A stretch of 64,000 nucleotides of DNA. It comes from Rhodosorus marinus CCMP1338 (taxonomy: Eukaryota > Plantae > Rhodophyta). Made by a program: the position numbers and the translations under genes. Of this stretch, positions 13,726 to 64,000 are shown in pieces. The notes under the pieces are model-generated. The model saw only the letters and a list, made by a program, of their open reading frames with translations. It ran no database searches and was not told the origin of the DNA. Position 1 is the first letter of the stretch; each line of letters begins with the position of its first letter. The stretch spans positions 1 through 64,000 of the forward strand of contig JAMWBK010000009.1 of the NCBI GenBank assembly GCA_029953675.1, in the 5' to 3' direction.

Positions 13726-13776
13726 ACTGGACTTTACTAGCATAGCCTGAAGCGCTACGCAAGGCGTGAAGATGAA

Positions 13777-16849: not shown

Positions 16850-16880
16850 AGGCTGCGACCTCGCAGCCGTGCCTGGAGCG

Positions 16881-18289: not shown

Positions 18290-18559
18290 CCTGAGGGAAT
18301 CCGCCAAGGAAACGTTGCACCACCAATATGAAACCGCACCGAGAGAATAATCGACCAAACCCAACCCAAATAGGAAAGGCCCCGCAACTCACCCACCCGG
18401 AAGACAGAAGTAGTTGCAAATGCAAACGACGCCCCGCGGAAAATCGAGGGGAAGGCGTACCAGAGGAAGCGCTTCCCGTAAACGAACACGCTCGCGACCG
18501 AAAAAGAAACAAAACCCCAATCCTCGACAACTAGCATAGCCTCGATACCCCAATTACTA

Positions 18560-21185
18560 GCCCAGACTAACGCAACCGTAAGCTTTACTGGGCCGCTGAC
18601 TACTGCAGCGCAACACTACGTCTAATCCTATCTAGGGAGAAACTTACTGGAACCCCGCTACCGGGGTCTCATGCTACGTTCAAAAGAAAAAACAGGCACC
18701 AGCGGATTCTCCAACTGGTCCACGCGCAAAGCGCCTACTGCTATCTCCGCGTTACCTCGCCATAGTTGCCGGTTTATCTGGGATCTCACGTCTCTGAGCT
18801 CCTCACTCCTGTGTAGTAAGTGTTTGCAGCTGTCGCGGAGGGACTCTTGTGCCATTTGCCCCGTACGCACAAACGTCTCTATCGCTATCGGGATGAACTT
18901 GTCATCCGGTTTCTCGATCACCATCGCTTCCTTGAAGTGAGCGATTTTCCACTTCTCCGCAGCTCTCGCCGCGTATCCGCTATTAACTTGGCTCCGCCGC
19001 AAATATTTTCCCTGTAGTGGTGACACCACGGTCACATCCAGCGCATACCTTTGTTTGATCCTCGGATGCCTAGCAACGATATCAGGTCGCAGTCCGTAGT
19101 TCTCGAAGCACCCCTCAGGTTCTTGCTCTACGTCCATGAAGTTCCATTGCCTCAGCCACCGTGCCAGCTCTCTGCAGATTTCGTCGTGTCTACGTTGCCA
19201 CAGTCCAGTTGATGTTGGGCAGTGATGAAACCGTTGTACCCCAGTCCTTCCGTGTTTACTCCGGCAACTAGTGCACTTCTCGGTGGTCCGCAATCCCGGA
19301 ATTGGCAGCCCCAGCAGTTGTCGAACGTTTACCTGCATCTCAACCGCACTCATTTTTTTCGGTGTCAGCGTTGGTATTTCACGCAGCCAGACTTTCGACC
19401 CGGATCCCGCGGCGGACCGTAATCGAGCTCGGTTTTCAGGGGAGATTCGTGGGTTGGTGACCAAGCTTTGGAATGCACAATGGTGTGCCTCTCGAGAGAG
19501 GGTTTGTTGTATTGAACCATTATTCCAAGCTGCAGTCTCGCCCGGTGCGCTTCGAAGAGATGTTTCGCGCGGTTGTTGCAGGGTAGTCAGTGCCAAGATC
19601 CGCGGCGGGGTTTCTGGTCCGAGCCTCCGTTGTATTGCTCGCGACGATGCACATATCTGGTCCGCAGCTGTGCAGTCGACCATCGTTGCTCCATCGGCTC
19701 GTATGTGTCCGGCGAGCGTGCTGCCGAAACTTCCCGCTCTAGTTCAGTCAGGTATGGCCATTCATCTTCATTGTTCCGGAAGGTGTTTCTCCATGACGAG
19801 TAAAACGCGATGGGTTGGACGCGCTTTCGAGTAGCGAAACCCAACCCTCCCCAGCGGCAGGGCAGAGGGATTTGGTCCGAGATCAGCTCTGCGTACTCGT
19901 CGTCCTCTACAGCTGTCGTAGCGAGGCCTCCGAATAGAATTTCCAGATGATATCTGGTCATCACATCCGCCTCGCGTGCCAGAGTTCTTCCAAACTCGTA
20001 TGCGAGGCATCGTAGAACATAGTCTATCCGCGTTTCCGCACAGAACCTGAAGAGGGCAATTTGCGTCGTAAGCTCCGTTTGTGGAAGCTCGGCAATTTCC
20101 TCAAAGAGTTTCTCATGCTTATTTTGCAACCCCCGGCACTCCTGTTCGATATGTTCTCGGCCGCCTATCGGTATCGAGTGGATAGTGACTCCGTCTCTGG
20201 TCACTTGGACTCCAGGAATCTCATGGTTGGCCACTCGCGTGGTAGTCAGTGTTCGCCCGTACACAGTGCACTTGCCGAGTTGCAGGCGTGCTCCAAGAGA
20301 GGGGAGCACAGTTTTTCCCCATGCCAGGGATGCCTTCAAGGCTTGTAGCGACCCGACAATCCTGATATCGTCGTGGATAGCAACAATCGTTTCGTTGGAG
20401 AACTTGGCTCGCAACGCTCTTAGAAAGGGCGCCAGGGATAGTGCATGTAGCACCGGCCCCAGTGGATCTCCCTGTTGGACTCCTGTAGCTGCTTGGAGAG
20501 TCAGGCGAGAGGTGTCGGTTTCGTTCTGTCCAGGGGAAGATCGCCAGCCACAGAGCGTCGGTGAGTCCGCGTTGTCGCTTCCATAGCCAAGCCTATACAC
20601 TGGTGCAAGCTCCGGGAAGTGCTCGTCCACCAGTTGCTTGGCAAGGCGTCGGTCGATGCGATTAAAGGCATTCTCCAGGTCTAGCCGAAGGATCATCGAA
20701 TCGGGTTCGCATGACAAATGGGCCTGGATCGCGTGAAGTGAGCGTTAAGCACCCGCCACTTACTCCAATACCCAGTTGTAAGGGCACCAGGAGCTCACGC
20801 ACCCTGTTCATAACCGCGTGAAGAGTCCATTGCGTTGCTACCTTGCGCAAAGCTTCTGATACTCCGATAGGGCGAACTCCGGGATGTTCCTGCGGCACTG
20901 AACCCTTGTTAGGCTTCGAGAACGGCAGGAGTCGACTGCCGCGAAGGGCGCGGATCAGAGCCGGGGAAAATTTCTCCGGAGCGGTCGCCAGTTGTCGCAA
21001 TACACGAATCAACGCCACTTGCGTCTGTTGAGTTGCACCTTGGAGGTGTTCCGCTCGGAGACCGCTAGGACCTGGGCTCTTGCCCTGAGAAAGACGTGCC
21101 ACGATCGACATGAGGCCCTCGTCGGCCGCTTTTCTTGAATCCCACCGCCGCTTAAGTGTTTCGGTATTCAGAGCGAGCAAAGATT
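18560..21185 (-). mobile_element. 5'-truncated, disrupted family C RLE element
   Basis: RT (LDLENAFNRI, GVQQGDPLGP, AIHDD) and RLE pieces in ORFs 20662-21180, 19587-20717 and 18658-19683; near-identical to 30450-33060. Confidence 0.92.
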
Positions 21186-21380
21186 CCAGGGTAACTGTAA
21201 ACTTTACTCGGCAACTGCCTAATGCAGCGCAACACTAATTCTATCAAGATCTAGGGAAAATGTGTGTTTAACCCCTGACTAACGTAACCGTAAGCTTTAC
21301 TGGGCAGCTGCCTACTGCAGCGCAACACTACGTCTAATCCTATCTAGGGAGAAACTTACTGGAACCCCGCTACCGGGGTC
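21185..21380 (-). repeat. Two stacked isolated 3' UTR/tail remnants (B-type ~85 bp, C-type ~110 bp)
   Basis: gtaaactttactcggcaactgcc... followed by taacccctgactaacgtaaccgtaagctttactgggcagctgcc...aaccccgctaccggggtct. Confidence 0.85.
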
Positions 21381-22168
21381 TAACCCCGTAGCCTTTATTG
21401 GGCAGCTACCTCATGTAGCGCATCACACGATCACTACGTACGCACTAACCAAACCTGGACTCCCTGTCCAGGAGTCTCATCTAAATTCTACTTAGGGGAA
21501 ATATCGGTCTATCTGCGCGATCTTTCTCGATCGCGTGCTCAACTAGCGCAGCATTGTGCTGCCACAAAATGCGGTTTAGTTGACCCCTCACCGACAATAG
21601 ATGGGAGTCACGATCATGCAGGTGCGCGCTCGCCGTTCGAAGAAATTCAAGGCTTGCCTGGCCCATTCCACCAAATGTCTCAAAAATGAACGGCACAAGA
21701 ACCACATCTCGGTTTTGCTCCCTCAGCACTTCCTTATAATGCAACGCCTTCGCTTGTTCGGCCTATTTCGCAGCATACCCTCAGTTCCAGCTCGTATGTC
21801 TCAACGGATGTCTTTGAAGTGGCGATGTCACCATCACATCCACCACGTACACGTATCCGCTCGTCGGGTGTCGTGCAACGATGTCTGGGCGAATTCCAGA
21901 CCCAGCAAAGAACCCCTGAGGCTCTACTTGTATCTCCGTGAAACTCCATAGGTGTAACCATCGACTCAGTTCCACCTGTAGCTCGTCGTGCCTCCTGGTT
22001 CGCATCCCTGATGAGGTCCTGCAGTGGTGCAGCCGCTGGATCCCACGCACATCGTGTGGTTGCTCGCAGACTGTGCACGTGTGTGACCGCCCTAGTCCTT
22101 GTAGTGGTAGCCCTAGAAGCATCCGCATGCTCCACAACATCTCATTTCGCGTCAACTGCCGCGGCCCT
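21380..22168 (-). mobile_element. Family D RLE 3' fragment with stop codons
   Basis: CTVC...HHCRTSSG..RRH, IRPDIV, VVDV, VPFIFETFG; same tail as the 12000 copy. Confidence 0.85.
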
Positions 22169-22748: not shown

Positions 22749-22750
22749 AA

Positions 22751-25700
22751 TTACCTCAGACTAACGTAACCGTAAACTTTACTGGGCAGCTGCCTACTGC
22801 AGCGTATCACTAGTGCTACTACTATCTAGGGAAAAGCTTAAGCTAACCCCGCTACCGGGGTCTAATGCTACGTTCGAAAGAAAAAACTGGGACCAGTGGA
22901 TTCGCCAACTGGTCCACTCGCAGAGCGCCTATCGCGATCTCCGCGTTCCCCTGCCATAATTTCCTGTTGATTTGAGCCCGAACATCGCTCAGTTCTAGGC
23001 TCCGGTGCAACAAATGCTTGCAGCTATCTCGTAGAAATTCTTGGGTCATGTGCCCTGTACGCCCAAAGCTCTAGATCGCAATCGGAATGAACATGTCTTC
23101 TGGCTTCTCTACGGACATAGCTTCTTTGTAATGCGCAAGTTTCCACCTCTCCGCTCTTTTTGCCGCATACCCGTTCTCTGACCCACTCCGGTTCACGTAT
23201 TTCTCCTGCAGTGGCGATGTAACCGTCACATCCAGCGCGTACGTTTGGAACGTCCTGGGATGAGTGGCAATGATATCTGGTCTTAGTCGGTAGTTCTCGA
23301 AGTACCCCTCCGGTTCTTGCTTCATGTCGATGAAATTCCAGCGATTCAGCCATCGCGCCAGCTCTGTACAGATTTCGTCATGCCTTCGCTGCCATAGTCC
23401 CGTCGATGTTGGGCAGTGGTGAAACCTTTGTACGCCATTAGTACCATGACTACTACCACAACTAGTACACTTCCCCGATGTCCGTATTCCCGGTATCGAC
23501 AAGCCCAACAGCTGTCGTACGTTCACTTGCAGTTCTGCTGTACTCAGTTTTTTTCGGCGCGAGCGTCGGCATTTCCCGTAACCACACTCCTGATCCGGCT
23601 CCAGCTGCGGACCTAATTCTGGCCCGATCTTCAGCCGAAATTTGTCCGTGGGATACCAGTCTTTGGAAAGCTGCATGGTGTGCCTCTCTGGAGAGGGTTT
23701 ATTGGATGGAACCATGTTTCCATGCTGGGGGGTCGGCTTGTTCTGCTCCTGGCGCGGTTTCGGTCCTCTGCGTCAGGGTGGCCAAGCTCCTGATTCGCTC
23801 TGGGGCGTCTGGGCGCAGTCTGCGTTGTGTTGCTGCTGCAGACTCGCGGATTTGGTCAGCAAGCTGTGCTGTCGACCTTTGGATTCTCCTCAGTGTGTGG
23901 TCGTCTGCAGGTGCCTCTGACGAAGATTGCGCTTGTACCTCGGTGAGGTATGGCCATTGCCCGTAATTACCTTTGAAACTTTCGTACCAGGCCGAGTAGA
24001 AGGCGATGGGCTGGATCCGTTGTCTCGTAGCGAGTCAAAGGCCTCCCCATCGACAGGGGAGTGCGATCTGGGCTTGTGTAGAGTTTTCGTAGTCAGGGTC
24101 CTCGGTGTCCGTAGTAGTGAGGCCTCCAAATAGCGTATCGAGGTGATAACGCGTCAGGGCGTCCGCTTCCCGTGCAAGTGTTCTTCCAAAGGGGTAGGCG
24201 AGGCTGCGTAGAAAGTAGTCTAGGCGGGGTTCAGAACAATACCCGAAGAGTGCCATTTTCGTATTCAGTTCCTCAGGGGGCAGGTGAATTATCTCCTTGA
24301 ATAGTTTCTCGTGGTTGTTTTGTATCTTCCGGCACTCGCTTTGGATGTAAGCGCGTGTTCCAATCGGAATGGAATGGATGGTAACTCCGTCTCGCGTTGC
24401 CGTGACGCCAGGGATGTCATGGCTGAGCAGTCGTGGCGTGGTCATCGTGTTGCCGTACAAGGTGCACTTGGCAAGCTGCAGTCGGGCTCCGAGTGAGGGA
24501 AGTAGTGCCTGGCCCCAGTGGAGTGAATCTTTCAGTAGTTGTAGCGGCCCTACGATGGTGATATCGTCGTGTATCGCCACAATGGTTAAATTAGGGGCTT
24601 TGTTGTGCAATGCTTCCAAGAAAGGCGCCAGGGAGAGCGCATGTAGGATTGGCCCTAGGGGATCTCCCTGTTGAACTCCCGTTGTGGCCCGAAGCGTCAA
24701 GCGATGGGTGTCGTCTTGGTCTGGACCTTGTTTGTCTCGCCATCCGAAGAGTGTAGGAGCATCCGTGCTGTCATTTCCGTAGCCAAGCCGGTACACGCCT
24801 TCAAGCTCGGGGAAATGGTGGTCCAGGATTTGCTTTGCAATGCGGCGGTCGATGCGGTTGAACGCATTCTCCAGGTCGAGCCGTAAGACGACGGCGTCAG
24901 GTTCACACGAGAGATGGGCCTGGATCGCGTGTAGTGATCGTTCACATCCACCTCTAACTCCGATGCCTAGTTGTAGAGGTGTGAGCAGTTCGGTGACGCG
25001 GTCGGTAACCGATCGAAGGATCCACTGTGTCGCCACCTTTCGGAGGACTTCGGGGACTCCAATCGGCCGGATGCCAGGTCTCGTTGCAGCGGTTGTGTTG
25101 CTCGTGGGTTTTTCGAACGGCAGTAATCTGCTGCTGCGCATTGCCCAGGTCATCGGGGGTGCAAACTTCTCTGGTGCCGTAGCTAGTTGCCGGAGAACGC
25201 GGATTAGAGCCACTTGGACGTCCTGAGTGGCCCCCTGCAGGTGTTCTGCTCGGAGTCCACTAGGTCCGGGGCTGGTACCTTGGGGAAGCCGGGCTATTAT
25301 CGCGAGAATACCTTCATCTGCTGCTTGTCGAGCATACCATCTTCTCCTGAGATTATCGGTGTCCTTGGAGAGCAGGAGTTGTAGGGCTTGGTCGACCTCC
25401 TCCGGTAGGGAACACTCCGTCGGGTCTGGAAAGAGTTCCTCCAATTGGTGCCACGTAGCGTTGGTAAATGGAGCCAGTTCGGTGGCCTGTAATCGTCGGG
25501 CCGCGTGTGAAAGGCGTCCGAGATGTGCCAATTTCAGGGCCTGTTTTCGGCGCCTTTGCGCCTGTTTCTGAGCTATCTCAGGTCCGCTTAGTGCCGTGCG
25601 AGGTGTCTGGTTGGAGGCGTACTCCTCGAGAGCAGTCCAAACTGTGTGAAACTCGCCTTCGAGTACGTGCGTGACCTGCGTGCCGATATGAAGAGCAGTA

Positions 25701-27620
25701 TACCCGAGGACCAATCCTGGGAGCCCGGAGAGGAAGAGGCTGGCATTCACTGGTGCGCTGCGGTCCATTGTGAGCTGGAGGGCGACCCGAAGGAGGCTGC
25801 TCCAGGCGTTGACGTGTGCGCGAGGCACGAAACCTCGAGTAGGGGCGGGACAGTGTGCGAGACGAGTCCACAACCAACCTCTGTCCGTGATATCGTTGAC
25901 GAAGACATTCCAGCGTTCAATCCAGTCCTGTCGCTTGGAGAAGAAAAGAGGCTCTTCCCGTCTGCGTTTGATTCCCCTACGTCGGTTCGGCATTATTGGG
26001 GGTTGTCTTCCTGACTTGTCTGGATGTCCATCGCATTATCGTGGGCTTCGGAGGGCGTCTGGGCATCGTTATCGCGCTGAGATGCTTCTGGGGCTGCGAG
26101 AGTCATCTCGGTGTCATGGCATGTGCCTGCCGCTGTCACGCGTGTGCGCTTCTGTTGGGGGGGGTCCGGAAAGTTGTGCGGGAGCTCGGCGTGTGGATTT
26201 TCCTCTTCGGCATCCACCTGTGGTAGTTGAGACGTGGCGCTGGAGTCACCCGAAGCGTCAACGGTCCCGCGGGCTTCCTGTGCGGCTCCGTCAGGAGCCG
26301 AGGCTTCTGGGGCTGCGTGTGTAGCTGCTGCAGTCTCAAGGGGTTCCACACTCTCCCCGGGGACCGCTGGTGGATGTTGTAGGCCATGTAACGCTCGTAG
26401 ACGCTCTTCTAGCGTCTCATGGATGGCTGCGAGAGTAGAGAACGACAGGTGTCTCTTTCCGAGCCTCGCGCGAATCCTGATGATCTGTTGTATGGCTCGT
26501 TGCAGCGTCTGGGCTGGGATATCCGCTGGGGTGATCCTTTGCCTTTCGTTGTAGCCCAACAGGTTGTCAGCCTCCAGTCCCTGTCCTGTGTGGAGGGTCA
26601 CTTGCCGGTCAGGAGGTCTCAGTGTGAACGATCCAAAGATCCCTGTTCTGAAAACGCCTCGAGCGATAGCGCTTTGTACAATCGGGATTGCATCCGGATG
26701 GCAGAGCAAACTTGCGTGTGATGAGATGAAATCCACATGCGCGATGTGAGAAGCTGGGATTCCCAGAGCGCGGCAGAGTACGGTGGTGAAGTCCGAAGGT
26801 GCCACATCATCCTGCCTTGGGGGGCGGACGTTTCGAAGGGTGGCAAGGATCGGTTTGGTCTCTGGTCCCCAGGTTGCTCCCTCCACCGTAGCGTGCAGCT
26901 GTCTCAGGGCTGCTTGCTGGGTCTGCGGCCCAGGGCGTCCTACTGTGCGGGTTGGTGCTGCTTCTCCGCGCACTGAGGCTGTCTGAGCCGTGCGCTCAGC
27001 GTAGGTAGGTTGTGCACTCCCATTCCCGATGACTGGGAAGGCCTCTGCGTAGTCCACTGGGACCGTGACACCTGTCCTGAGCGGAAGTTGATTGAGACGC
27101 GTTCCGGCTGCATGTTGATTGATGGCCGCCGCCGGCGGGTGCTGTTGCAGGATTTGGGAAGGGTTCGGTGCTGCGGCTCCACTGTGCCACATATAAGGTT
27201 CTGCTGAAAGCTCGGAGAGACGTGCGGTAATTCCTTCGAGTTCAATGGTGCTGTTAATCCGTGAGTAGAGTTTGAATACAGCCTTGTAGAAGTCCGCGAT
27301 AACTGCTTCGCCAATTCCCAAGTCCTGATAGCACCTGTCGAAGGCGCGAAGTTGGTGCAAAAAGACTGCCGCAGGTCCTGTTGCCTCTTGAGTCTCCATC
27401 CTGTAAGCCTCCTGTGTGTTCACTGCTTCGAAATCCTGGGTGCTTGTTGTCCTGCCGCTCGGTTCTGGCCTCCGACTCCCGTTCGGTGTCCCCACCCCCT
27501 CTTCGCCTGGGCGAGGGCCGTTGGTGCCCGGGTGGCGGAGAGGTGCTCGGTACTTTCCCAGCTTCTCCTTCTCGATCATAAAGCTTTCGTTAATAAAATC
27601 TCACAGTATAATTGTGCTTG
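22751..27620 (-). mobile_element. Full-length RLE non-LTR retrotransposon family B (ORF1 25993-27579; ORF2 from 25993 with nonsense mutations near 24035 and 23700)
   Basis: 528-aa ORF1; RT motifs IRPIG, LDLENAFNRI, GVQQGDPLGP, AIHDD; RLE CTSC..HHC..RRH, LRPDI, ALDVTV, KLAHY; 3' UTR and tail. Confidence 0.93.
25993..27579 (-). CDS. Family B ORF1 (intact, 528 aa)
   Basis: Open frame homologous to family C ORF1 (FLHQLR.FDRCYQDLGI, LRNVRPP); its TAA overlaps the ORF2 ATG. Confidence 0.85.
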   Translation of the reverse strand: MIEKEKLGKYRAPLRHPGTNGPRPGEEGVGTPNGSRRPEPSGRTTSTQDFEAVNTQEAYRMETQEATGPAAVFLHQLRAFDRCYQDLGIGEAVIADFYKAVFKLYSRINSTIELEGITARLSELSAEPYMWHSGAAAPNPSQILQQHPPAAAINQHAAGTRLNQLPLRTGVTVPVDYAEAFPVIGNGSAQPTYAERTAQTASVRGEAAPTRTVGRPGPQTQQAALRQLHATVEGATWGPETKPILATLRNVRPPRQDDVAPSDFTTVLCRALGIPASHIAHVDFISSHASLLCHPDAIPIVQSAIARGVFRTGIFGSFTLRPPDRQVTLHTGQGLEADNLLGYNERQRITPADIPAQTLQRAIQQIIRIRARLGKRHLSFSTLAAIHETLEERLRALHGLQHPPAVPGESVEPLETAAATHAAPEASAPDGAAQEARGTVDASGDSSATSQLPQVDAEEENPHAELPHNFPDPPQQKRTRVTAAGTCHDTEMTLAAPEASQRDNDAQTPSEAHDNAMDIQTSQEDNPQ

Positions 27621-27622
27621 TT

Positions 27623-28118
27623 CCCAGACTAACGAAACCGTAAACTCTCGTCAGAGTAACGTAACCCCAGAAAAAACAGGCACCAGCGGATTCTCCAACT
27701 GGTCCACGCGCAAAGCGCCTAGCGCTATCTCTGCGTTACCTCGCCATAGTTGCCGGTTTATCTGGGATCTCACGTCGCTCAGCTCCTCACTCCTGTGCAG
27801 TAGGTGTTTGCAGCTGTCGCGGAGGAACTCTTGTGCCATTTGCCCCGTACGCCCAAACGTCTCTATCGCTATCGGGATGAACTTGTCATCCGGTTTCTCG
27901 ATCACCATCGCTTCCTTGTAGTGAGCGATTTTCCACTTCTCCGCAGCTCTCGCCGCGTATCCGCTATCATCTTGGCTCCGCCGCAAATAGTTTCCCTGTA
28001 ATGGTGACACCACGGTCACATCCAGCGCATACCTTTGTTTGGTCCTCGGATGCCTAGCGACGATATCAGGTCGCAGTCCGTAGTTCTCGAAGTACCTCAG
28101 GTTCTTGCTCTACGTCCG
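27623..28118 (-). mobile_element. Family C 3' fragment lacking its 3' UTR, capped by telomere-like units
   Basis: Matches C ORF2 up to gtgcctgttttttct, then ggggttacgttactctg. Confidence 0.85.
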
Positions 28119-28123
28119 TGAAA

Positions 28124-31100
28124 TCTGGGGTAAAGTGTACACGGTAAAAAGGTAAAGTTCGTACGGAAGACAACAACAAAAGTTCGTAAGAAAGTTCGAA
28201 GATGATCGTGAGGGAGGTACGCGGGCCGTACCCCGAACCTCTTGTCATTCAGGGCCCGGACCCCTCGGGCACCCGGGAAGTTTTGCAAAGGCACCAGCAC
28301 CAGTCTGATGGCGACGTGCAGGAGACACCAACGGAACCACAAGCAGGCAATGTTCAAGCAAGAACGCGGACCGAGTCTGCAGCCGCAACCGACCCGGCAG
28401 CCACATTCTTGCATCAACTGCGTAGCTTCGACAGATGCTACCAGGACCTGGGCATCGCTGCGTCCGAAATTACAGACTTCTACAAAGCCGTTTTTCAACT
28501 GTACTCGAGGGTCAACAGCTCGCAAGAGCTGCAAGGTGTCACCGGACGCCTTACGGAGTTGTCCCGGAAACCGGGTATGTGGGAAGGTGGAGCCGCTACT
28601 ACGAATTCTGCACCATTTCCGCATGATCTCCCGCGAGATCTCCCGCGACAGGCCGTAGGCAACCACCTCGGCCCCGAAACCCCTTACCGTAACGGTCGTC
28701 TGCCAGGAAGTTATGCCGTCCATGATTTAGGAACCCGGCTCCCTGCGCCCCAGGGAGGGACAGGTGTCCGGGATCTAGGACACCATGCGGAGACATTCCC
28801 AGCCATCGGGGAGGGCCCTACAAGGCCAACCTTCGCCGATTTCGCAGCACAAAAAGAACCAGCGAGAGGAGGAGATGCTCGTTCCAGAACTTGTGGACGC
28901 CCTGGACCCCAGACCCAACAGGCTGCCCTACGGCAACTGCACGCTACGGTCGGGGGGTCTGGCTGGGGACCCGATGTTGCTCCAGTCCTCGCGACGCTAC
29001 GGAATGTCCGACCCCCAAGGCTGGATGAGGTGGCCCCTGCGGAGTTTGCAACGGTTCTTTGCAGAGCACTGGGTATGCCCAGCTCTTATGTGGTGCATGT
29101 GGACTTTATTGCCTCCCATGCCTGCCTGCTGTGCAATTCCGATTCTCCAAAGTGCCATCTCCCGAGGAGTTTTCCGGACTGGGATATTCGGATCCTTCAC
29201 ACAACGACACGCCGATAGACAAGTCAGCCTTTACACTGGCCAGGCGCTGGACCCAGACAACCTTCTGGGTTACCTCGAACGTCAGACCATCGCTCCCGGG
29301 GATATTGCTGCCCACACGCTGAAGCGGGCCATCGAGCAGCTTGTCCGCATTCGTTCGAGGATCCGCAGGCGACAACTCTCCTTCCACACTCTCGCAGCGC
29401 TCTACGAGTATCTGGAGGCACGACTAGAGCTCCTAAAACGCAGACAACATCCGCCTGAGGTACCCGGGGAGTGCGCGGAACCCCCGGGGCCTGCAGCCGC
29501 TTCGAACGCAGACCCTGAAGCCTCGTCCCTTCCAGGGGATGTACAGGCAGACCGTGGGACAGTTTGACGCCCAGGTTGAGACTAGCGCGACTTCCCAAGT
29601 ACCTGAGAACGCAGCACACGAGGACAATCCCCATGCGGAGCTCCTCTGCAACCTTCCGGAGCCACCTCAACAGAAGCGCTCGCGAGTATCCGCCGATGGA
29701 ACCGGACCGGATACTGAGATGACTCCGGCAGCCGTGGAGACTCCACCGGATACCACTGTGATACAGGTTGCCCTTGACGGCAACCATCACGCGATGGACA
29801 CGCAGGAGAGCCAGGAAAACCCAGCGCAAGAATGCCGAGCAGACGTAGGGGAATCAAACGACGCCGCGACGAGCCTCTGTTCTTCTCGGATCGTCAAGAC
29901 TGGATCAGGCGGTGGAGCGTCTTCGTCGACGACGTCACGGAAGGAGGCAGGCAGTGGACGCGCCTTACACACTGCCCGGTTCCCACACGGCGATTTGTGC
30001 CACGCGCCCAGGTTCAAACATGGAGCTGCCTCTTCCGTGCTGCATTAGAGCTCTCTATGGACAGCACCGCACCAACAAACGCCAGCCTGCTTCTTGTCGG
30101 ACTTCCAGGCCTGGTCCTTGGACACTCTGCACTTGATGTTGGCATTCAGGTATCGCATGTGCTTGAAGGAGAATTCTCTACGGTCTGGAGCGCTCTAGAG
30201 GACAAGGCGTCTATGCTGTCGCATACTACCGCACCGCAAGGAGCTGAAGCGGTTCGACGCAAACATCTCGGGCGCCACAAGCGAGCGCTGAAACTAGCAC
30301 ACCTTGGCCGCCTTTCAGATGCAGCTCGGAGCCTACAGGCCACCGAAATGGCACCTTTTACCGCGGCTACGTGGAGGCAACTACAAGCGCTCTTTCCCAA
30401 CCCGGCGGAAGGTGACTTACCAGACGAGATTGCACACGCCCTGCAATCTTTGCTCGCTCTGAATACCGAAACACTAAAGCGGCGGTGGGATTCAAGAAAA
30501 GCTGCCGACGAGGGCCTCATGTCGATCGTGGCACGTCTTCCTCAGGGCAAGAGCCCAGGTCCTAGCGGTCTCCGAGCGGAACACCTCCAAGGTGCATTTC
30601 AACAGACGCAAGTGGCGTTGATTCGTGTATTGCGACAACTGGCGACCGCTCCTGAGAAATTTTCCCCAGCTCTGACCCGCGCCCTTCGCAGTAGTTGACT
30701 CCTGCCGTTCTCGAAGCCTAACAAGGGTTCAGTGCCGCAGGAGCATCCCGGAGTTCGCCCTATCGGAGTACCAGAAGTTTTGCGCAAGGTAGCAACGCAA
30801 TGGACTCTTCACGCGGTTATGGACAGGGTGCGTGAGCTCCTGGTGCCCTTACAACTGGGTATTGGAGTAAATGGCGGGTGCGAACGCTCACTTCACGCGA
30901 TCCAGGCCCATTTGTCATGCGCACCCGATTCGGTGGTCCTTCGGCTAGACCTAGAGAATGCCTTTAATCGCATCGACCAACGCCTTGCCAAGCAACTGGT
31001 GGACGAACACTTGCCGGAGCTTGCACCAGTGTATAGACTTGGCTATGGAAGCGACAACGCGGACTCACCGACGCTCTGTGGCTGGCGATCTTCCCCGGGA

Positions 31101-33064
31101 CAGAACGAAACCGACACCTCTCGCCTGACTCTCCAAGCAACTACAGGAGTCCAACAGGGAGATCCACTGGGGCCGGTGCTACATGCACTATCCCTGGCGC
31201 CCTTTCTAAGAGCGTTGCGAGCCAAGTTCCCCAACGAAACGATTGTTGCTATCCACGACGATATCACGATTGTCGGGTCGCTACAAGCCGTGAAGGCGTC
31301 CCTGGCATGGGCAAAAACTGTGCTCCCCTCTCTTGGAGCACGCCTGCAACTCGGCAAGTGCACTGTGTACGGGCGAACACTGACTACCACGCGAGTGGTC
31401 AACCATGAGATTCCTGGAGTGCAAGTGACCAGAGACGGAGTCACCATCCACTCGATACCGATAGGCGGCCGAGAATATATCGAACAGGAGTGCCGGGGGT
31501 TGCAAAATAAGCATGAGAAACTCTTTGAGGAAATTGCCAAGCTCCCACAACCGGAGCTTACGACGCAAATTGCCCTCTTCAGGTTCTGTGCGGAAACGCG
31601 ACTAGACTATGTGCTACGATGCCTCGCATACGAGTTTGGAAGAAATCTGGCACGCGAGGCCGACGTGATGACCAGATATCACCTGGAAATTCTATTCGGA
31701 GGCCTCTCGCTACGACAGCTGTAGAGGACGACGAGTACGCAGAGCTGATCTCGGACCAAATCCCTCTGCCCTGCCGCTGGGGAGGTTTGGGTTTCGCTAC
31801 TCGAAAGCGCGTCCAACCCATCGCGTTTTACTCGTCATGTAGAAACACCTTCCGGAACAATGAAGATGAATGGCCATACCTGACTGAACTAGAGCGGGAG
31901 GTTACGGCAGAACGCTCACCAGACACATACGAGCCGATGGATCAACGATGGTCGACTGCACAGCTGGCGGACCAGATCTGTGCATCGTCGCGAGCAATAC
32001 AACGGAGGCTCGGACCAGAAACCCCACCGCGGATCTTGGCACTGACTACCCTGCAACAACCGCGCGAAATGTCTCTTCGAAGCGCACCGGGCGAGACTGC
32101 AGCTTGGAATAATGGTTCAATACAACAAACCCTCTCTCGAGAGGCACACCATTGTGCATTCCAAAGCTTGGTCACCAACCCACGAATCTCCACTGAAAAC
32201 CGAGCTCGAATACGGTCCGCCGCGGGATCCGGGTCGGGAGTCTGGCTGCGTGAAGTACCAACGCTGACACCGAAAAAATTGAGTGCGGTTGAGATGCAGG
32301 TAAACGTTCGACAACTGCTGGGTCTGCCAATTCCGGGATTGCGGACCACCGAGAAGTGCACTAGTTGCCGGAGTAAACACGGAAGGACTGGGGTACAACG
32401 GTTTCATCACTGCCCAACATCAACTGGACTGTGGCAACGTAGGCATGACGAAATCTGCAGAGAGCTGGCACGGTGGCTAAGGCGATGGAACTTCATGGAC
32501 GTAGAGCAAGAACCTGAGGGGTACTTCGAGAACTACGGACTGCGACCTGATATCGTTGCTAGGCATCCGAGGACCAAACAAAGGTATGCGCTGGATGTAA
32601 CGGTGGTGTCACCATTACAGGGAAACTATTTGCGGCGGAGCCAAGATGATAGCGGATACGCGGCGAGAGCTGCGGAGAAGTGGAAAATCGCTCACTACAA
32701 GGAAGCGATGGTGATCGAGAAACCGGATGACAAGTTCATCCCGATAGCGATAGAGACGTTTGGGCGTACGGGGCAAATGGCACAAGAGTTCCTCCGCGAC
32801 AGCTGCAAACACCTACCGCACAGGAGTGAGGAGCTGAGAGACGTGAGATCCCAGATAAACCGGCAACTATGGCGAGGTAACGCGGAGATAGCACTAGGCG
32901 CTTTGCGCGTGGACCAGTTGGAGAATCCGCTGGTGCCTGTCTTTTCTTTTGAACGTAGCATGAGACCCCGGTAGCGGGGTTCCAGTAAGTTTTTCCCTAG
33001 ATAGGATTAGACGTAGTGTTGCGCAGCAGTAGGCAGCTGCCCCGTAAAGCTTACGGTTACGTTA
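28124..33064 (+). mobile_element. Full-length RLE non-LTR retrotransposon family C (ORF1 from 28202; ORF2 29832-32974, disrupted at 30696 and ~31710)
   Basis: ORF1 MIVREVRG...; RT VRPIG, LDLENAFNRI, GVQQGDPLGP, AIHDD; RLE CTSC..HHC..RRHD, LRPDIV, ALDVTV, KIAHY, IAIETFG. Confidence 0.93.
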
Positions 33065-34850
33065 CCTCAGACTAACGTAACCGTAAGCTTTACGGGGCAG
33101 CTGCCTACTGCTGCGCAACACTACGTCTAATCCTATCCAGGGAAAAACTTACTGGAACCCCGCTACCGGGGTCTCATGCTACGTTCAAAAGAAAAGACAG
33201 GCACCAGCGGATTCTCCAACTGGTCCACGCGCAAAGCGCCTAGTGCTATCTCCGCGTTACCTCGCCATAGTTGCCGGTTTATCTGGGATCTCACGTCTCT
33301 CAGCTCCTCACTCCTGTGCGGTAGGTGTTTGCAGCTGTCGCGGAGGAACTCTTGTGCCATTTGCCCCGTACGCCCAAACGTCTCTATCGCTATCGGGATG
33401 AACTTGTCATCCGGTTTCTCGATCACCATCGCTTCCTTGTAGTGAGCGATTTTCCACTTCTCCGCAGCTCTCGCCGCGTATCCGCTATCATCTTGGCTCC
33501 GCCGCAAATAGTTTCCCTGTAATGGTGACACCACGGTCACATCCAGCGCATACCTTTGTTTGGTCCTCGGATGCCTAGCAACGATATCAGGTCGCAGTCC
33601 GTAGCTCTCGAAGTACCCCTCAGGTTCTTGCTCTACGTCCATGAAGTTCCATCGCCTCAGCCACCGTGCCAGCTCTCTGCAGATTTCGTCGTGCCTACGT
33701 TGCCACAGTCCAGTTGATGTTGGGCAGTGATGAAACCGTTGTACCCCAGTCCTTCCGTGTTTACTCCGGCAACTAGTGCACTTCTCGGTGGTCCGCAATC
33801 CCGGAATTGGCAGCCCCAGCAGTTGTCGAACGTTTACCTGCATCTCAACCCCACTCATTTTTTTCGGTGTCAGCGTTGGTACTTCACGCAGCCAGACTCC
33901 CGACCCGGATCCCGCGGCGGACCGTATTCGAGCTCGGTTTTCAGTGGAGATTCGTGGGTTGGTGACCAAGCTTTGGAATGCACAATGGTGTGCCTCTCGA
34001 GAGAGGGTTTGTTGTATTGAACCATTATTCCAAGCTGCAGTCTCGCCCGGTGCGCTTCGAAGAGACATTTCGCGCGGTTGTTGCAGGGTAGTCAGTGCCA
34101 AGATCCGCGGTGGGGTTTCTGGTCCTAGCCTCTGTTGTATTGCTCGCGACGATGCACAGATCTGGTCCGCCAGCTGTGAAGTCGACCATCGTTGATCCAT
34201 CGGCTCGTATGTGTCTGGTGAGCGTTCTGCCGAAACCTCCCGCTCTAGTTCAGTCAGGTATGGCCATTCATCTTCATTGTTCCCGAAGGTGTTTCTCCAT
34301 GACGAGTAAAACGCGATGGGTTGGACGCGCTTTCGAGTAGCGAAACCCAACCCTCCCCAGCGGCAAGGCAGAGCGATTTGGTCCGAGATCAGCTCTGCGT
34401 ACTCGTCGTCCTCTACAGCTGTCGTAGCGAGGCCTCCGAATAGAATTTCCAGATGATATCTGGTCATCACATCCGCCTCGCGTGCCAGAGTTCTTCCAAA
34501 CTCGTATGCGAGGCATCGTAGAACATAGTCTAGTCGCGTTTCCGCACAGAACCTGAAGAGGGCAATTTGCGTCGTAAGCTCCGTTTGTGGAAGCTTGGCA
34601 ATTTCCTCAAAGAGTTTCTCATGCTTATTTTGCAACCCCCGGCACTCCTGTTCGATATATTCTCGGCTGCCTATCGGTATCGAGTGGATGGTGACTCCGT
34701 CTCTGGTCACTTGCACTCCAGGGATCTCATGATTGACCATTCGCGTGGTAGTCAGTGTTCGCCCGTACACAGTGGAGTTGCCGAGTTGCAGGCGTGCTCC
34801 AAGAGAGGGGAGCACAGTTCTTGCCCATGCCAGGGATGCCTTCAAGGCTT
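33065..34850 (-). mobile_element. 5'-truncated family C copy joined tail-to-tail to the preceding element
   Basis: ORF 33163-34845 is the reverse-complement match of ~31290-32974. Confidence 0.93.
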
Positions 34851-35139
34851 GTAGTGATGGACGCTGTCCTTGAATAGAGTAGGCCGCACAATTCCATTTT
34901 TCACGCGTTAGTGCAAGTGCGACTCACAACTGTGCGGCGGGCACCTATTGGATTCATTTCATTTGCACTGGGATCTGAACTGCTTATGAACTCCATGCAC
35001 GACTAACTCATCTTCAGCGGTGAACTGGCAGTGGATTACCCTGTTTCTTCGATTCGTTAACCACGAGGCAACTATTTCAGATACATTGCCCAGAACGGAA
35101 TGTCCTCTACCTGGGGTTGCCAATGCCCTAAAGTGCAAA

Positions 35140-35230
35140 AATTGTAAAGCGTAAAAATTGTAAAGTGGAAATAGTGTAAAGTGTTAAATGTGTAAAGTGC
35201 TAAAAGTGTAAAAAGTGTAAAGTGAAAATA
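35140..35230. repeat. Degenerate minisatellite built on GTAAAGTG/TAAAAATT
   Basis: aaagtgcaaaaattgtaaagcgtaaaaattgtaaagtggaaatagtgtaaagtgttaaatgtgtaaagtg... Confidence 0.7.
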
Positions 35231-35591
35231 GTCAGGGCGCAGCGCTGCACATTGACAGTTCTGTCAAACTCCGAGATACACAGCTCTTGCAGTCTACGGT
35301 GACAGTAGAGAGCGCATCATCTTGCAAGAAAAATGCTGGGGTGGGGTTTGGTCCGCCATCTTGGCGATTGGAAGCAAGGAAGTACGTGGGTTACTTCGGG
35401 GTCGCAGACTGGCTTTTAGACCGGAAAGTACCTGGAACCTGCAAGAAAACGCATCAACGGCAGTTTCGCATCCCATACATGACACTCCGTTTAGCCAATG
35501 CAGTTAACAAACAGTGCAGAGCTTAGTCAATTCTACTCCCTCACTAAATCAGAGATCGACGTCGTGATACTGGCTTGCGAGTGATATCTCT

Positions 35592-46390: not shown

Positions 46391-46990
46391 GAATAAACTA
46401 AACGCTTTGGTGTTCGTTGCACACCGGGACGCGAACAATCCAATGAGAGGGTACTCACCCGCAACGAAATTATGAAAGAATGATGCAGGAACTCTGTCAC
46501 GCTGGGCACTCGAGTCCAGCAGCAGCAATGGTGTTTACAAATGGCTGTGGTGCCCGGGATAATCACCCGCAAGGAAATTATGATAAGAATGATGCAGGAA
46601 CTCGATCGATCACAAACTAGGCTCACGAGTCCAGCGGTAGCCCTGCCGAGCAATAACTTTTCCTATAAACTCGAATTCTATTGCTCGGCAGGGCTACCGC
46701 TGGAATAAGCTAAACGCTTAGGTGTTCGTTGCACACCGGGACGCGAACAATCCAATGAGAGGGTACTCACCCGCAACGAAATTATGAAAGAATGATGCAG
46801 GAACTCTGTCACGCTGGGCACTCGAGTCCAGCAGCAGCAATGGTGTTTACAAATGGCTGTGGTACCCGGGATAATCACCCGCAAGGAAATTATGATAAGA
46901 ATGATGCAGGAACTCGATCGATCACAAACTAGGCTCACGAGTCCAGCGGTAGCCCTGCCGAGCAATAGAATTCGAGTGTATAGGAAAAGT
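46391..46990. repeat. ~265-bp direct duplication separated by a ~50-bp inverted segment
   Basis: 46391-46655 repeats at 46703-46967; 46656-46704 is the reverse complement of 46942-46990. Confidence 0.9.
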
Positions 46991-60191: not shown

Positions 60192-61358
60192 TGTTCCTCG
60201 AAAACTAGCCCGGATAGACTCAGTCCCATGCGCCGAGACAAAATCAGCTGCTCGCCTCGCTCTTTAGCCCGCGACCAAGCTCGATCACCATCAAAGCGAT
60301 AAGCTGATGTCAACAGCTCCGCTACTATCCAAACTCACACGGCTCTAAAAAGTTCAACTAATTTCGGCATAGCGACTGACTTACCTAACTCTAAATACCA
60401 CGACGTGCCCACTAGATAATCTCCGAAGCCGCTGAGGGAATACTACACGACATTCTTGAACGAGCGAGAGCACTCATGGCTACCAGTCTTAGCGATTTCC
60501 GAACCGAATCTGTCCAGAAGATGACGATAGGTTGAAAGTGGCCCCACCTTCGGACAGGGGACTCTGACCAGTGGGTGAATCTTTAGTGACCCTCATACCA
60601 TAAAAGCAAAACTTGTCTCATGCCGTTTTTTTCCTTGTTTTGAATCATACGCACTGGTCTCCGAGCGATAGAGCTTGATAAACGACGTGCCCTTCAAAGT
60701 CTGACATATTCGAGGAAGACTAGTCGGTCTGTTTTGCTTTGTTCTCGGATGTTATTGCTTCATTCAAACCTTAGCTAATCTGAGAAGAGGGCAAGCTGAG
60801 CAAAAACTACGCGCTTGATCGTCTCTGGGCACAAAGTTAGCTCCCTGGTCACGAAGTTAGCGCCCTGGTCATGTCCCCTCCAAACAACGAGAAGCCTCTC
60901 CCCCTCCCCCTCCTCCTCCCCAGCCCCGGAGCGCACAACTTCCAGATTATAACGCTTCAGGCGGCGCCAAGGAGCTGAACCAACGTTGTGCAATCGCAAC
61001 TCCATTCCCTCGGCTAAAAAAAGGTAAAAGACACGTGGAGATGATTGGAATCCAAGTCCATGATTGGATCGAGGCAGTTCATGAAGTGCTAATAACCATC
61101 CTAACCATGGGATCATTGGCAGTTTGAGCAGAGGACGGGGATCCGTGGGAGCTTGGTGGAGGTATGGCGTAGTACGGATGTTGAGGAGATCTGGAATTCT
61201 TACCACCTGGCTTTCAATAGGGATAACAGTTTACCGGGTCTTCAGGTTCAGCGCAGGGGCTTGGAATGCTGTCGGCGGAGTTAGACGTGCCGTGAACGTG
61301 GAAACGATCGGGTGGGAGTTGCCTTGATCCGGGTGTAGTGCGTATTAGCAGATCTGAA

Positions 61359-62798
61359 ATGGAGGTTGGATCGCGATCAACGGAAACGGATGACCCAGCG
61401 ACCCAGAAAAATATTCGCACTGAATCTGGTAGTGCCCTCAGGGCGATATCAGTTGATGAGGCGATTGACCTTGCTGGCGGTTTTGGCAGGTCCCAACTCC
61501 GGATGGTGGCTCTCATGGGAGTGACCTACATGGCATGTAGCGTTAACATGTTCCTTCCAGTCTTCCTCGAGCCAAAGGTTCTAGAAATCTGGAGCGACGT
61601 TCGCCCTGTCCAGGCACAAACTCTCGCTTCATTTTTCTTCCTTGGCTTCTGGGTAGGTTTGTTCATTCTGGGTTCATGGGCGGACAGGGCTGGGAGACGG
61701 AAGGTGATAATCGTGTCGTTAATCGGTATGATCATCACTACCTGCGCAACTTTTCTGGTAAACTCGATTACGATGATGATGATAACTCGAGTGGCAGCTG
61801 GATTTGCGACTTCCGGAGCTTTTAATGGTTCGATAGTTATCGTTCTGGAATCTGTACCAAGCAACTGGAGGGTAGGATCCAAGGCTTTGTTAGCATTGTT
61901 CTGGGATGTGGCTCTGCTGACATACGCGGTGGCTGCGTATTTGCTTCGTAACGCATCCTGGAGATACTTGATAGTGATGAACGCCTACAGTATTCTCGGG
62001 CTCCTGCTGACCCAGCTGTTGTTGTCTGAGTCGGCTCGATTCTTGCTGGCTCAAGTATCTCATGAGAGAGCAACTCAAGCGGTGCTCCAGATGGCCCGGC
62101 AGAACGGGAAATCGATCAACTTTTTGTTTCCCTCAACTGATGAGCCCAACTTCCGACTGCGATCACATCCGCATGGAGCCAACGGTAGCACATCCTTCTT
62201 CGCCTTGTGGAAGCCGCGTGTGGCTGTGCTTACCCTGGCTATTGGGTTTGCGCAGTTTGCTGGGACAATGGCCTTCTACGGTCTAACCCTATCGAATGCA
62301 CAGCACGTCACGGAAAACCAGTATATGAATACCGTTCTCGGAGCCTTTGCTGAAGTCCCAGGGATCTTTGTCACGTGGCTCGCAGCTGAGCGCTTTGGGC
62401 GAAGGATAACGTACGCCGCGATTTTGGGTACACTAGGTGTCGCCCTCATTGGGGCCTCGTTGCCCTCGCTGGGCGGCGTGGCGACAGGAATCCTGCTTCT
62501 CGTTGGTAGATTTGCGGCAGCTGGAGCTACAATGATTTGCTACGTTGTGTCTGCCGAGTGCTTTCCAACAGACTGCCGCAGTGCTGGAGTGGCCTGGGGA
62601 AGTAGCTGTGGGCGACTGGGTGCAATCCTTGCCCCATTAACCTTCGATCTTCCGTTCGGAAGTGTCGCGTATTCAGTGATTAACCTATTGGCAATGGTTA
62701 GTACCGCCGCTCTTCTACCAGAAACTCTTGGGAAGAAGATGGACTCCCATGACAGCAACGAAGAGCACGAAGACTACGAAGAGATCGAAACTGGGTAG
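61359..62798 (+). CDS. MFS transporter (SV2/organic cation transporter-like)
   Basis: GGFGRSQ start, G.WADRAGRR motif A, AERFGRR, YV.SAE.FPT..R..G; 12 TM pattern. Confidence 0.9.
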   Translation: MEVGSRSTETDDPATQKNIRTESGSALRAISVDEAIDLAGGFGRSQLRMVALMGVTYMACSVNMFLPVFLEPKVLEIWSDVRPVQAQTLASFFFLGFWVGLFILGSWADRAGRRKVIIVSLIGMIITTCATFLVNSITMMMITRVAAGFATSGAFNGSIVIVLESVPSNWRVGSKALLALFWDVALLTYAVAAYLLRNASWRYLIVMNAYSILGLLLTQLLLSESARFLLAQVSHERATQAVLQMARQNGKSINFLFPSTDEPNFRLRSHPHGANGSTSFFALWKPRVAVLTLAIGFAQFAGTMAFYGLTLSNAQHVTENQYMNTVLGAFAEVPGIFVTWLAAERFGRRITYAAILGTLGVALIGASLPSLGGVATGILLLVGRFAAAGATMICYVVSAECFPTDCRSAGVAWGSSCGRLGAILAPLTFDLPFGSVAYSVINLLAMVSTAALLPETLGKKMDSHDSNEEHEDYEEIETG

Positions 62799-62919
62799 AC
62801 TGAATTGAGTATGGCGAGGTTGGCTGATCGCCGAGCACCGCACCTACATACATGAGCGACTGTTTCAGTGTTTTGAGGAAAGACCGGCGTCTACCTGACG
62901 AAAAGAGGTTGTGTCCAAA

Positions 62920-62941
62920 GTAACCCCAGACTAACGTAACC
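62920..62941 (+). other. Solo telomere-like motif with terminal redundancy (GTAACC-CCAGACTAAC-GTAACC)
   Basis: One 16-bp unit plus 6 bp; exact complement of the family B/C tail consensus. Confidence 0.8.
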
Positions 62942-63613
62942 GCGTACACTTACCCCCAACTGCAGGTAGGCCCTGAGAGTTCCTTTACAGAGCGGTTTCT
63001 AGTCGAGACTTTGGGACAAGGCATTGATGGGATGCGCGGACCTCGAGGGCTGAGTTGCAAGAGTGCACGCTCAGAGCGTGATCTACACGATACTATGTGG
63101 CTTGTCACACCTCCACCCAGTTGGTGACGATGTGTGGTCCCTTTCCAATCTAGCCTCTGCGTAGCAGCACCTTCCCTCGCTGTCCAAAAAGGCAGGACGC
63201 CACAATCACATACGGTGATTGTACATTGGACCGGAAACACTATGGTAGAAAACTTTCATCAGCTATCCGCGAGGTTGTTCCATACGCTTTGAGGACCCCA
63301 TCAATAAAGACAGACATGATAAACCCACAATGTTCTCTCGTTGCTGCCACCCCCATCCGTACCCGAGTAACCCACAACTCTAACACAGTTGGATGTGCAC
63401 GCCGAGCTTTTGATCGATGTTTATCGTGTTCGGGATTGTCACAGGAGCGCGGCCCACTTTCGAATGTCCGGATTCTTTAGTACGGAGCACATTTGAGTGT
63501 GTTTGCACTTGAAACGGTGTGGAGTAATTGATCGTGTTCAAATTTCTAATGACCACGTCGGATTGAAAGATCGGCTACCTTGTTTTCGAAAAGCTCGGTT
63601 TTTACGTTCAGAG

Positions 63614-63799
63614 ATGCCCCGCCCACGAGAGCCTAAGGACTATGAATGGTGCGACAACGTTCCTCTGAATGTTAAATTAACGAACGATCCGGTACCTGTG
63701 CTGAAGGCCATAGCAGAAGGAAGAATTGACACCGCCATTGAAGAATTCTCCTTCAAGCAGTGCGACAAGCAAGCGCAAGAGTTTGTTCGCTGCGCTGAG
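63614..63799 (+). CDS. First exon of a probable CX9C (CMC1-like) mitochondrial protein; incomplete
   Basis: MPRPREPKDYEW...KQCDKQAQEFVRCAE followed by a gt donor; one CX9C motif. Confidence 0.45.
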
Positions 63800-64000
63800 G
63801 TAAACGGAGGCCCTTCAATTGAGTTTCCTTAGCAGCCTAGTCCACTGCTTTCTTGTGCGGCACCTACGTGCTACCCGAATTGCTGCTAATTCACTCTTGG
63901 GTTGCTTCCTGGTTCTCATCCTACAAAGGGAAAGTTTTTCTCTCTGCTGTTTTCCTGCAAGACCGAGAATAGAACGATGCTGGACTGTACGAAAAAATAC

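Follow-up and report, generated by a model that had tools for sequence, protein, structure and literature searches.

The subject of this analysis is a short repeat tract at positions 62920-62963 of a 64,000-nucleotide stretch of DNA from the red alga Rhodosorus marinus CCMP1338 (contig JAMWBK010000009.1, positions 1 to 64,000; hereafter the window), and its relation to a family of long interspersed nuclear elements (LINEs) that fills positions 1-35000 of the same stretch. The tract lies 122 nt beyond the stop codon of an MFS/sugar-transporter open reading frame (ORF) on the plus strand (61338-62798; PF00083, 2.6e-29; PF07690, 4.1e-26). The first AATAAA downstream of this stop codon is found at 63303-63308, and its position indicates that the tract may be situated inside the 3' untranslated region (UTR) of the MFS mRNA. 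The initial annotation had reported on the plus strand a 22-mer, GTAACCCCAGACTAACGTAACC, and this sequence is indeed present at 62920-62941; it has the form of one 16-nt unit with a 6-nt terminal redundancy, on the C-rich strand, which is the same strand as the MFS gene. In plus-strand order, the locus consists of gtctacctg (62889-62897), the block GTAACCCCAGACTAAC GTAACC (62920-62941), and caggtaggc (62963-62971).

Read on the minus strand, the locus is ...CCTG CAGTTGGGGGTAAG TGTACG CGGTTAC^GTTAGTCTGGGGTTAC TTTGGACAC..., in which ^ marks the point that corresponds to the LINE insertion site, between 62936 and 62935. The perfect 16-bp unit GTTAGTCTGGGGTTAC (62920-62935), G-rich on this strand, is the sole exact copy within the window. 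It is preceded by CGGTTAC (62936-62942), which corresponds both to the end of a preceding unit (GGTTAC) and to the terminal 7 nt of the LINEs (aCGGTTAC). Farther upstream, at 62943-62963, an anchored alignment to tandem units recovered about 1.5 degenerate units, G-CAGT-TGGGGGTAAG followed by T--GTACG(C), whose bracketed C is base 62942. The resemblance of this flank to tandem units had an empirical p of 0.013 without GGTTAC and of 0.0003 with it. The whole tract thus measures about 44 bp, or about 2.8 units, of which the last 1.4 are perfect; on the minus strand, its 5' side is degenerate and its 3' side perfect.

In addition to the exact copy, the window holds four near copies of the 16-mer (2-3 mismatches), at 21268, 22750, 27661, and 33061; 0.26 near copies are expected by chance, and none of 100 shuffled sequences reached five. 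All six close copies (0-1 mismatch) of its 12-mer core are LINE junctions or the locus itself. The robust overlap between locus and elements amounts to 23 nt (62920-62942), made up of the 7-nt CGGTTAC with which the LINEs terminate and the full 16-mer. When 62800-63400 was compared with the remainder of the window in a sensitive search, only junction matches of 18-29 nt were returned.

The elements that share this sequence form an array of retroelements of about 5 kb. Their ORFs match RVT_1, and among solved structures, R2 and L1 (LINE-1) proteins are nearest to them in sequence. At the C-terminus, a conserved C..C..HHC (CCHC) motif is followed by RPD...D...K, with C81, C84, H97/H98, C99, R143-P144-D145, D160, and K190 invariant in four family members; on these motifs, the region is a predicted restriction-like endonuclease. 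The combination of a reverse transcriptase with a C-terminal CCHC/PD-(D/E)xK endonuclease is that of site-specific LINEs, and early-branching LINEs such as LINE/CRE are typically site-specific. We therefore class the elements as putative R2/CRE-type LINEs, a placement in the CRE clade that derives from the RepeatMasker label, the domains, and the structure matches. In the R. marinus genome, 9% is attributed to LINE/CRE in a RepeatMasker table (PMC10250338, supplement). A Penelope-like/Athena-type identity, which had been guessed from the tandem layout, was ruled out by R2 and L1 as nearest structures and by the restriction-like endonuclease C-terminus. A protein-guided metagenome scan with the endonuclease region gave no match.

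A representative full-length copy occupies 22766-27619 on the minus strand, with ORF1 at 25993-27579, the ORF2 reverse transcriptase at 24035-25993, and the CCHC and RPD...D...K region at 23071-23715. Between 11990 and 28122, every copy is on the minus strand and each joint contains 0-1 unit; the exceptions to this orientation are the plus-strand copies of 28123-33060 and the copy ending at 11692. A uniform head-to-tail array with short target tracts at its joints is the layout of telomere-associated LINEs.

The junctions between elements were read on the sense strand of the element, which is the minus strand for most copies. Element 3' ends read ...ACGGTTAC and are followed by at most one copy of GTTAGTCTGGGGTTAC; family-1 elements terminate in ...CCCAGTAAAG(T/C)TTACGGTTAC. 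On the minus strand, a unit GTTAGTCTGAGGTAAT (22750-22765) links the full-length LINE 22766-27619, at its 3' end, to a 5'-truncated LINE, a unit GTTAGTCAGGGGTTAA (21268-21283) follows a 98-nt LINE 3' fragment, and a unit GTTAGTCTGAGGTAAC (33061-33076) is common to two tail-to-tail LINE copies, at the center of a 99% inverted duplication. Also on this strand, a partial unit GTTAGTCTGGG (18561-18571) separates a LINE 3' end from the full-length 5' end of the next LINE, and a variant unit GTGAGTCTGGTAC(TTAC) (12880-12892) follows the 3' end of the LINE at 12893-18560. The 3' end at 27661 is followed by GGGGTTAC only and that at 27620 by GTTAGTCTGGGAAC, while the 3' ends at 21191 and 11692 have no tail. 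In a second family (3' ends 21385 and 11990), GTTAG is present without a full unit, and the end can equally be read as ACGG + GGGGTTAG. The tails therefore measure 16, 16, 16, 14, 13 (17), 11, or 8 nt, or are absent, and the maximum is one unit.

Beyond the tail comes the 5' end, full-length or 5'-truncated, of the next element. Seven of the ten 5' junctions are preceded by a complete or near-complete unit or by the 3' end of another element, the 11-nt tail at 18561-18571 being an exception; direct joints of a 3' end to a 5' end occur at 21191, 21385, and 11990. The most complex joint, at 27620-27668 on the minus strand, is a patchwork of GGGGTTAC / GTTACTCTGACG / AGAGTTTACGGTTTC / GTTAGTCTGGGAAC, in which half of a unit and a degenerate unit beginning are joined to the terminal 15 nt of a LINE and to a unit of 14 nt. 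It looks like the product of microhomology-guided repeat addition or of template jumping. It also contains a boundary between two units (TTAC|GTTA) without an intervening element, GGGGTTAC|GTTACTCTG, at 27661-27668/27660. The LINE that precedes this joint is cut at ...TTTTTTCT, so that TCT|GGGGTTAC stays in the register of the unit.

Six junctions in the window, together with the junctions in R. marinus transcript contigs described below, share the form GGTTAC|GTTAGTCTG... in identical phase and hence the same flank. When the insertions are undone one at a time, several tandem units are left. These observations fit an insertion that would take place between two units, at GGTTAC^GTTAG, and leave the target unduplicated. 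The three direct joints would not be predicted by a model with a 16-bp target duplication. A tRNA-derived or other small-RNA gene as the target of the LINEs was rejected: the window contains no tRNA gene, the locus has no Rfam match, and the shared flank never extends beyond one unit.

Homologues of the endonuclease region were found in R. marinus transcriptome contigs from Joint Genome Institute (JGI) samples 3300016967 and 3300017118, and these contigs bear on the question of whether the 16-mer belongs to the target or to the element. Their elements share 70-80% DNA identity with those of the window, and the same 20 nt as at the locus are found at their LINE junctions. In contigs L003-L005 the joint reads ...AAAGCTTACCGTTAC|GTTAGTCTGGGGTTAT|, followed by an element truncated inside ORF2 (...CCGTTAC|GTTAGTCTGGGGTTAT|5'-truncated LINE). 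Contig L009 has a joint with GTTAG only, and contig L007, on its minus strand, has one isolated unit. Contig L004 carries a degenerate three-unit tract at 143-190, the flanks of which resemble units (p = 0.002 and p = 0.027). At the level of sequence, the unit is conserved between the window and these contigs while the elements diverge, as would be expected of a host target.

Within the window, the variants of the unit do not follow the element subfamilies. Despite 95-98% identity, the copies that end at 18572 and 33077 adjoin different unit variants (...CTGGG and ...CTGAGGTAAC, respectively); the copy ending at 22766 is only 77-78% identical to these two, yet it has the GAGGTAA variant in common with 33077. 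In addition, a LINE transcript in an R. marinus contig (L008, 2095-2141; JGI 3300016967) ends in ...CCCAATAAAGCTTACAGTTACGTTA followed by A9. Its poly(A) comes directly after ...ACAGTTACGTTA, 3-4 nt past the terminal GTTAC and 16 nt past an AATAAA in the conserved 3' end. The tail as a part of the element RNA was rejected on these grounds, namely that unit variants are independent of subfamily and that the transcript is polyadenylated after GTTACGTT(A), and for the same two reasons we regard the 16-mer as target DNA. The genomic LINE copies have no poly(A) even though the RNA is polyadenylated; reverse transcription therefore presumably starts internally, at GGUUAC. The target is probably a tandem repeat and is possibly telomeric.

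From these data, a mechanism can be proposed. The LINE RNA ends in ...AAUAAAGCUUAC(A/G)GUUAC-GUU(A), then poly(A). The endonuclease would nick the C-rich strand at the boundary of two units, GGTTAC^GTTAG; the GGUUAC(GUUA) of the RNA 3' end would pair with the nicked C-rich strand, and reverse transcription would be primed there. Repeated insertion would then turn a tandem array of units into a head-to-tail array of LINEs with 0-1 unit per joint. The repeat, with its one G/T-rich strand and the motifs TTAG and GGGG, may be a telomeric or subtelomeric repeat of the alga; the locus itself would then perhaps be a stray fragment of such a telomere-type repeat, comparable to a short interstitial telomeric sequence.

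For the locus itself, we consider it likely that 62920-62963 is a short interstitial tract (about 2.8 units, 44 bp) of GTTAGTCTGGGGTTAC, the 16-bp repeat into which the R2/CRE-type LINEs of the window specifically insert; the tract would be an unoccupied or vestigial site in the 3' flank of the MFS gene and not a gene for a structured RNA. In the single haplotype analyzed, the candidate empty site is uninterrupted at the insertion point (CGGTTAC^GTTAGTCTGGGGTTAC; 62920-62942, minus strand), and element sequence is present on neither side of it. The initial annotation had offered three readings, a telomerase RNA gene, an unoccupied target, and a footprint of recombination between element ends; the second is favored by the intact insertion point GGTTAC^GTTAG. 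The specific link that had accompanied it, to the 5' flank of a plus-strand element, was not significant: instead of the claimed 18 of 21 matching positions (minus strand of 62937-62957 against 28127-28147), we found 17 of 20 (minus strand of 62939-62958 against 28126-28145; blastn E = 5.7), and 28123-28156 is probably the own 5' end of that element.

Several points weigh against a repeat tract at this place. A long tandem array of the 16-mer was seen nowhere in the window or in public contigs; arrays are deduced from the logic of the junctions, from one unit-unit boundary (27661-27668), and from degenerate tracts. The support for extra degenerate units at the locus, at p = 0.013, is moderate. 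This reading also requires that a 44-bp tract came to be placed in a unique gene flank, and a telomerase template would show the same perfect 16 + 6 arrangement. Lastly, the base before GGTTAC at the locus is C, as in the LINE 3' end, and not G as in the unit, and because of this match a 7-nt LINE remnant and a plain repeat tract are inseparable.

This single base leads to a related explanation, in which a minus-oriented LINE inserted into an existing unit and kept only a few nucleotides after 5' truncation in the course of target-primed reverse transcription, or was later deleted between GGTTAC microhomologies, so that CGGTTAC and a unit remained. Every family-1 LINE 3' end has the C (aCGGTTAC), unlike the unit (gGGGTTAC), although one base is weak evidence. 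Very short LINE 3' fragments do exist in the array, of 15-27 nt (27634-27660), 77 nt (21191-21267), and 98 nt (21284-21381), and MoTeRs are known to leave internalized relics that end in a partial repeat on the 3' side (PMC7367193). However, the flank beyond the 7 nt does not significantly resemble any LINE 3' UTR: in the anchored alignment to LINE 3' UTR ends p was 0.11, and the locus scored 3 where true family members score 19-29. The larger version of this idea, a 5'-truncated fragment of a LINE 3' UTR, had been suggested by a collinearity spotted by eye and failed the same test. Since a relic would still need a pre-existing unit on the site, it is a variant of the interstitial-tract explanation rather than a true alternative, and we regard it as unlikely. 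As to a footprint of recombination between element ends, it is indistinguishable from an empty site here; the LINEs have no terminal repeats, and element loss by recombination could therefore proceed only via the 6-7 bp GGTTAC microhomology.

A gene for telomerase RNA was the more far-reaching proposal. The plus-strand RNA 5'-GUAACCCCAGACUAAC-GUAACC-3' would serve as the template for a 16-nt telomere repeat GTTAGTCTGGGGTTAC, possibly processed from the 3' UTR of the MFS mRNA, as has been described for a telomerase RNA of Ustilago maydis that derives from an mRNA 3' UTR. The perfect consensus unit with its 6-nt redundancy, the sole perfect copy in the window, agrees with this proposal, as does the behavior of the unit as a tandem, strand-asymmetric, telomere-like repeat (one G/T-rich strand, TTAG, GGGG) that is targeted by CRE-like LINEs; telomeres are known targets of CRE/SLACS-like LINEs such as the MoTeRs (PMC7367193), and telomere repeats are unknown for most red algae (PMC7046594; PMC3622300). 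At the locus, nevertheless, the 16 + 6 shape is the one feature left to it. The 9-bp helix that had been reported around the 22-mer has both arms in place, the right one starting at base 62963, which is also the outermost base of the degenerate units, and the arms are paired in the minimum-free-energy fold with one G-U; the energy of this fold, in contrast, is no better than that of shuffled sequences (z = -1.30 for the plus strand, where 19 of 200 shuffles were equally good; z = -0.36 for the minus strand; z = +0.52 for 62800-63330). The loop closed by the helix leaves 21 nt after the putative template, which is too short and makes a pseudoknot improbable inside it. Rfam returned no match to telomerase RNA or to any other family at E<=10 over 61800-64000, and from these searches and the z-scores no telomerase-RNA structural core (boundary helix, pseudoknot, stem-terminus element) emerged. 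Between the MFS stop and the template (62799-62919), a scan by eye saw no TATA-like or USE-like promoter signal; the first T4 downstream of the template is about 470 nt away, and a bacterial promoter/terminator scan found nothing, which is uninformative for eukaryotic DNA. Both ends of the tract are in the phase of LINE junctions (CGGTTAC and a full unit), as expected for a target and a coincidence of about 1 in 16 or rarer for a template, and the 22 nt 3' of the template resemble degenerate units, which a template does not need. The exact 22-mer had no match in metagenome, prokaryote-genome, and viral contig collections, and it was absent from JGI contigs including the R. marinus transcriptomes, a weak point since the R. 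marinus units end in TTAT. The prior also differs, with one telomerase RNA gene per genome of about 31 Mb against thousands of LINE junctions and relics. We consider a telomerase RNA gene at this locus very improbable. The same low probability applies to the widest form of the proposal, in which GTTAGTCTGGGGTTAC would be the telomere repeat of Rhodosorus-type (stylonematophycean) red algae, 62920-62941 the first red-algal telomerase RNA template, in or processed from the MFS 3' UTR, and 1-35000 a field of telomere-targeted retrotransposons; to our knowledge, a 16-nt telomere unit would, if true, be the longest outside budding yeasts. Finally, the 9-bp inverted repeat that brackets the tract could be taken to indicate a small structured RNA, or a hairpin element, that has nothing to do with the LINEs, or the resemblance to the junctions could be due to chance. 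A junction identity of 23 nt is beyond chance, as the shuffled sequences indicate, the R. marinus LINE junctions contain the same 20 nt, the hairpin energy is unexceptional, and no tRNA or Rfam family was matched, which leaves hardly any room for either idea.

Among known systems, the closest parallel to a repeat tract targeted by these LINEs is found in fungi. MoTeR1 and MoTeR2 are SLACS/CRE-like LINEs with a restriction-like endonuclease that reside in Magnaporthe telomeres, with short interstitial telomere tracts at their joints and internalized relics (PMC7367193). The MoTeRs of Magnaporthe oryzae and the FoTeRs of Fusarium resemble the window LINEs in having a C-terminal restriction-like endonuclease after the reverse transcriptase, head-to-tail arrays with many 5'-truncated copies, and very short target tracts at the joints; stable MoTeR joints hold at most two TTAGGG, and MoTeR relics with a partial repeat at the 3' end likewise occur at internal loci (PMC7367193). 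In contrast to the MoTeRs, the window LINEs have a 16-bp target unit that is putatively telomeric, and their host is a red alga. The orientation also differs: MoTeR 5' ends face the chromosome end, whereas the window LINEs have the G-rich repeat strand on the 3' side of their sense strand. In addition, and unlike MoTeR/FoTeR and TRAS/SART, the R. marinus LINE RNA is polyadenylated and its poly(A) is not copied.

TRAS1 and SART1 of Bombyx mori insert in a fixed phase into a short tandem repeat with 5-bp units by means of an apurinic/apyrimidinic (AP)-type endonuclease, and reverse transcription in LINEs of this type begins at a point fixed by a few target-like nucleotides of the RNA 3' end. The window LINEs are similar in their fixed insertion phase in a short repeat and in the target-like RNA 3' end, and they differ in their restriction-like endonuclease and 16-bp unit; TRAS and SART have been cited as telomere-repeat-specific (PMC7367193). 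CRE1, CRE2, SLACS, CZAR, and R2 share the domain architecture and strict site specificity, and R2 proteins are the best structural matches; their targets are spliced-leader or rRNA genes and not a short tandem repeat, and the likeness to them is one of domains. The locus resembles telomerase RNA templates in its single repeat unit with a short terminal redundancy on the C-rich strand, and differs from them in that no telomerase-RNA structure, promoter, or conservation was found there and that its flank is like decayed units. With short interstitial telomeric sequences it shares an isolated tract of 1-3 units in unique DNA with one perfect and one degenerate end; the difference is that the telomeric nature of the 16-bp unit is putative.

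Taken as such a tract, the locus is a commonplace by-product of site-specific retrotransposition. What appears to be new is that red-algal LINEs with a restriction-like endonuclease apparently insert at one phase of a conserved 16-bp repeat, which is undescribed in the literature searched; a search for the repeat in any rotation retrieved only unrelated primers and sequences. In red algae, telomeric repeat amplification protocol (TRAP) and hybridization assays with standard telomere probes have failed (PMC3622300). The window reaches no chromosome end, and the R. marinus genome paper (PMC10250338) gives no telomere sequence. The 16-bp repeat has the composition and behavior of a telomere-type repeat, and if arrays of GTTAGTCTGGGGTTAY form the chromosome ends, the telomere motif would be settled for the stylonematophycean class. 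In that case, the telomerase RNA could be found among C-strand copies of at least 1.2 units located away from LINEs, and the present locus would be one candidate.

Other features of the LINE family were observed. A conserved hairpin, (A)ACCCCGCTRCCRGGGT then CATGCTACGTTC, is located about 90-115 nt from the LINE 3' end (2102-2197, 12960-13055, 18639-18734, 22833-22928, and 33144-33239). It persists in the R. marinus contigs and among families whose identity elsewhere is only about 80%, and it may be a 3' UTR element that is recognized by the reverse transcriptase. A full-length U2 small nuclear RNA (Rfam 126 bits, model 1-192/192) lies on the minus strand at 1824-2020, within 1796-2035. It is placed exactly between one LINE 3' end and, 28 nt on, the 5' end of another LINE, the 5' UTR of which matches 18478-18527. 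By analogy with U6-L1 chimeras, this arrangement looks like a chimeric retrocopy made by template switching and not like a functional U2 gene.

Two LINE copies form an inverted repeat at 31706-34431, of 1359 bp and 99% identity, with its center at 33065-33072. The 8-nt center is inside one 16-mer unit with self-complementary ends (GGTTACGTTA / TAACGTAACC), which points to a break in the unit followed by fold-back (hairpin-primed) inverted duplication, and not to two separate insertions.

The host genes of the window encode a CCT-motif protein, a DUF1499 protein, an ANTH-domain protein, and the MFS transporter. The ANTH-domain protein shares 83% identity with a protein of Rhodosorus marinus (MMETSP0011) and 38% with one of Compsopogon, as expected of a stylonematophycean alga near R. 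marinus; a look-up of its ORF for exact protein matches returned none. In the unique part of the window, a 312-bp unit is tandemly duplicated at 46391-46967 (1.8 copies, 98% identical). A C-free tandem repeat of GTAAAGTG-type words, with a period of 8/16 and about 5-8 copies, is present at 35129-35232, where the LINE array gives way to the unique genes. Words that resemble this repeat (GGGGTAAAGTGTACACGGTAAAAAGGTAAAG) constitute the 5' end of the plus-strand LINE, at 28127-28156.

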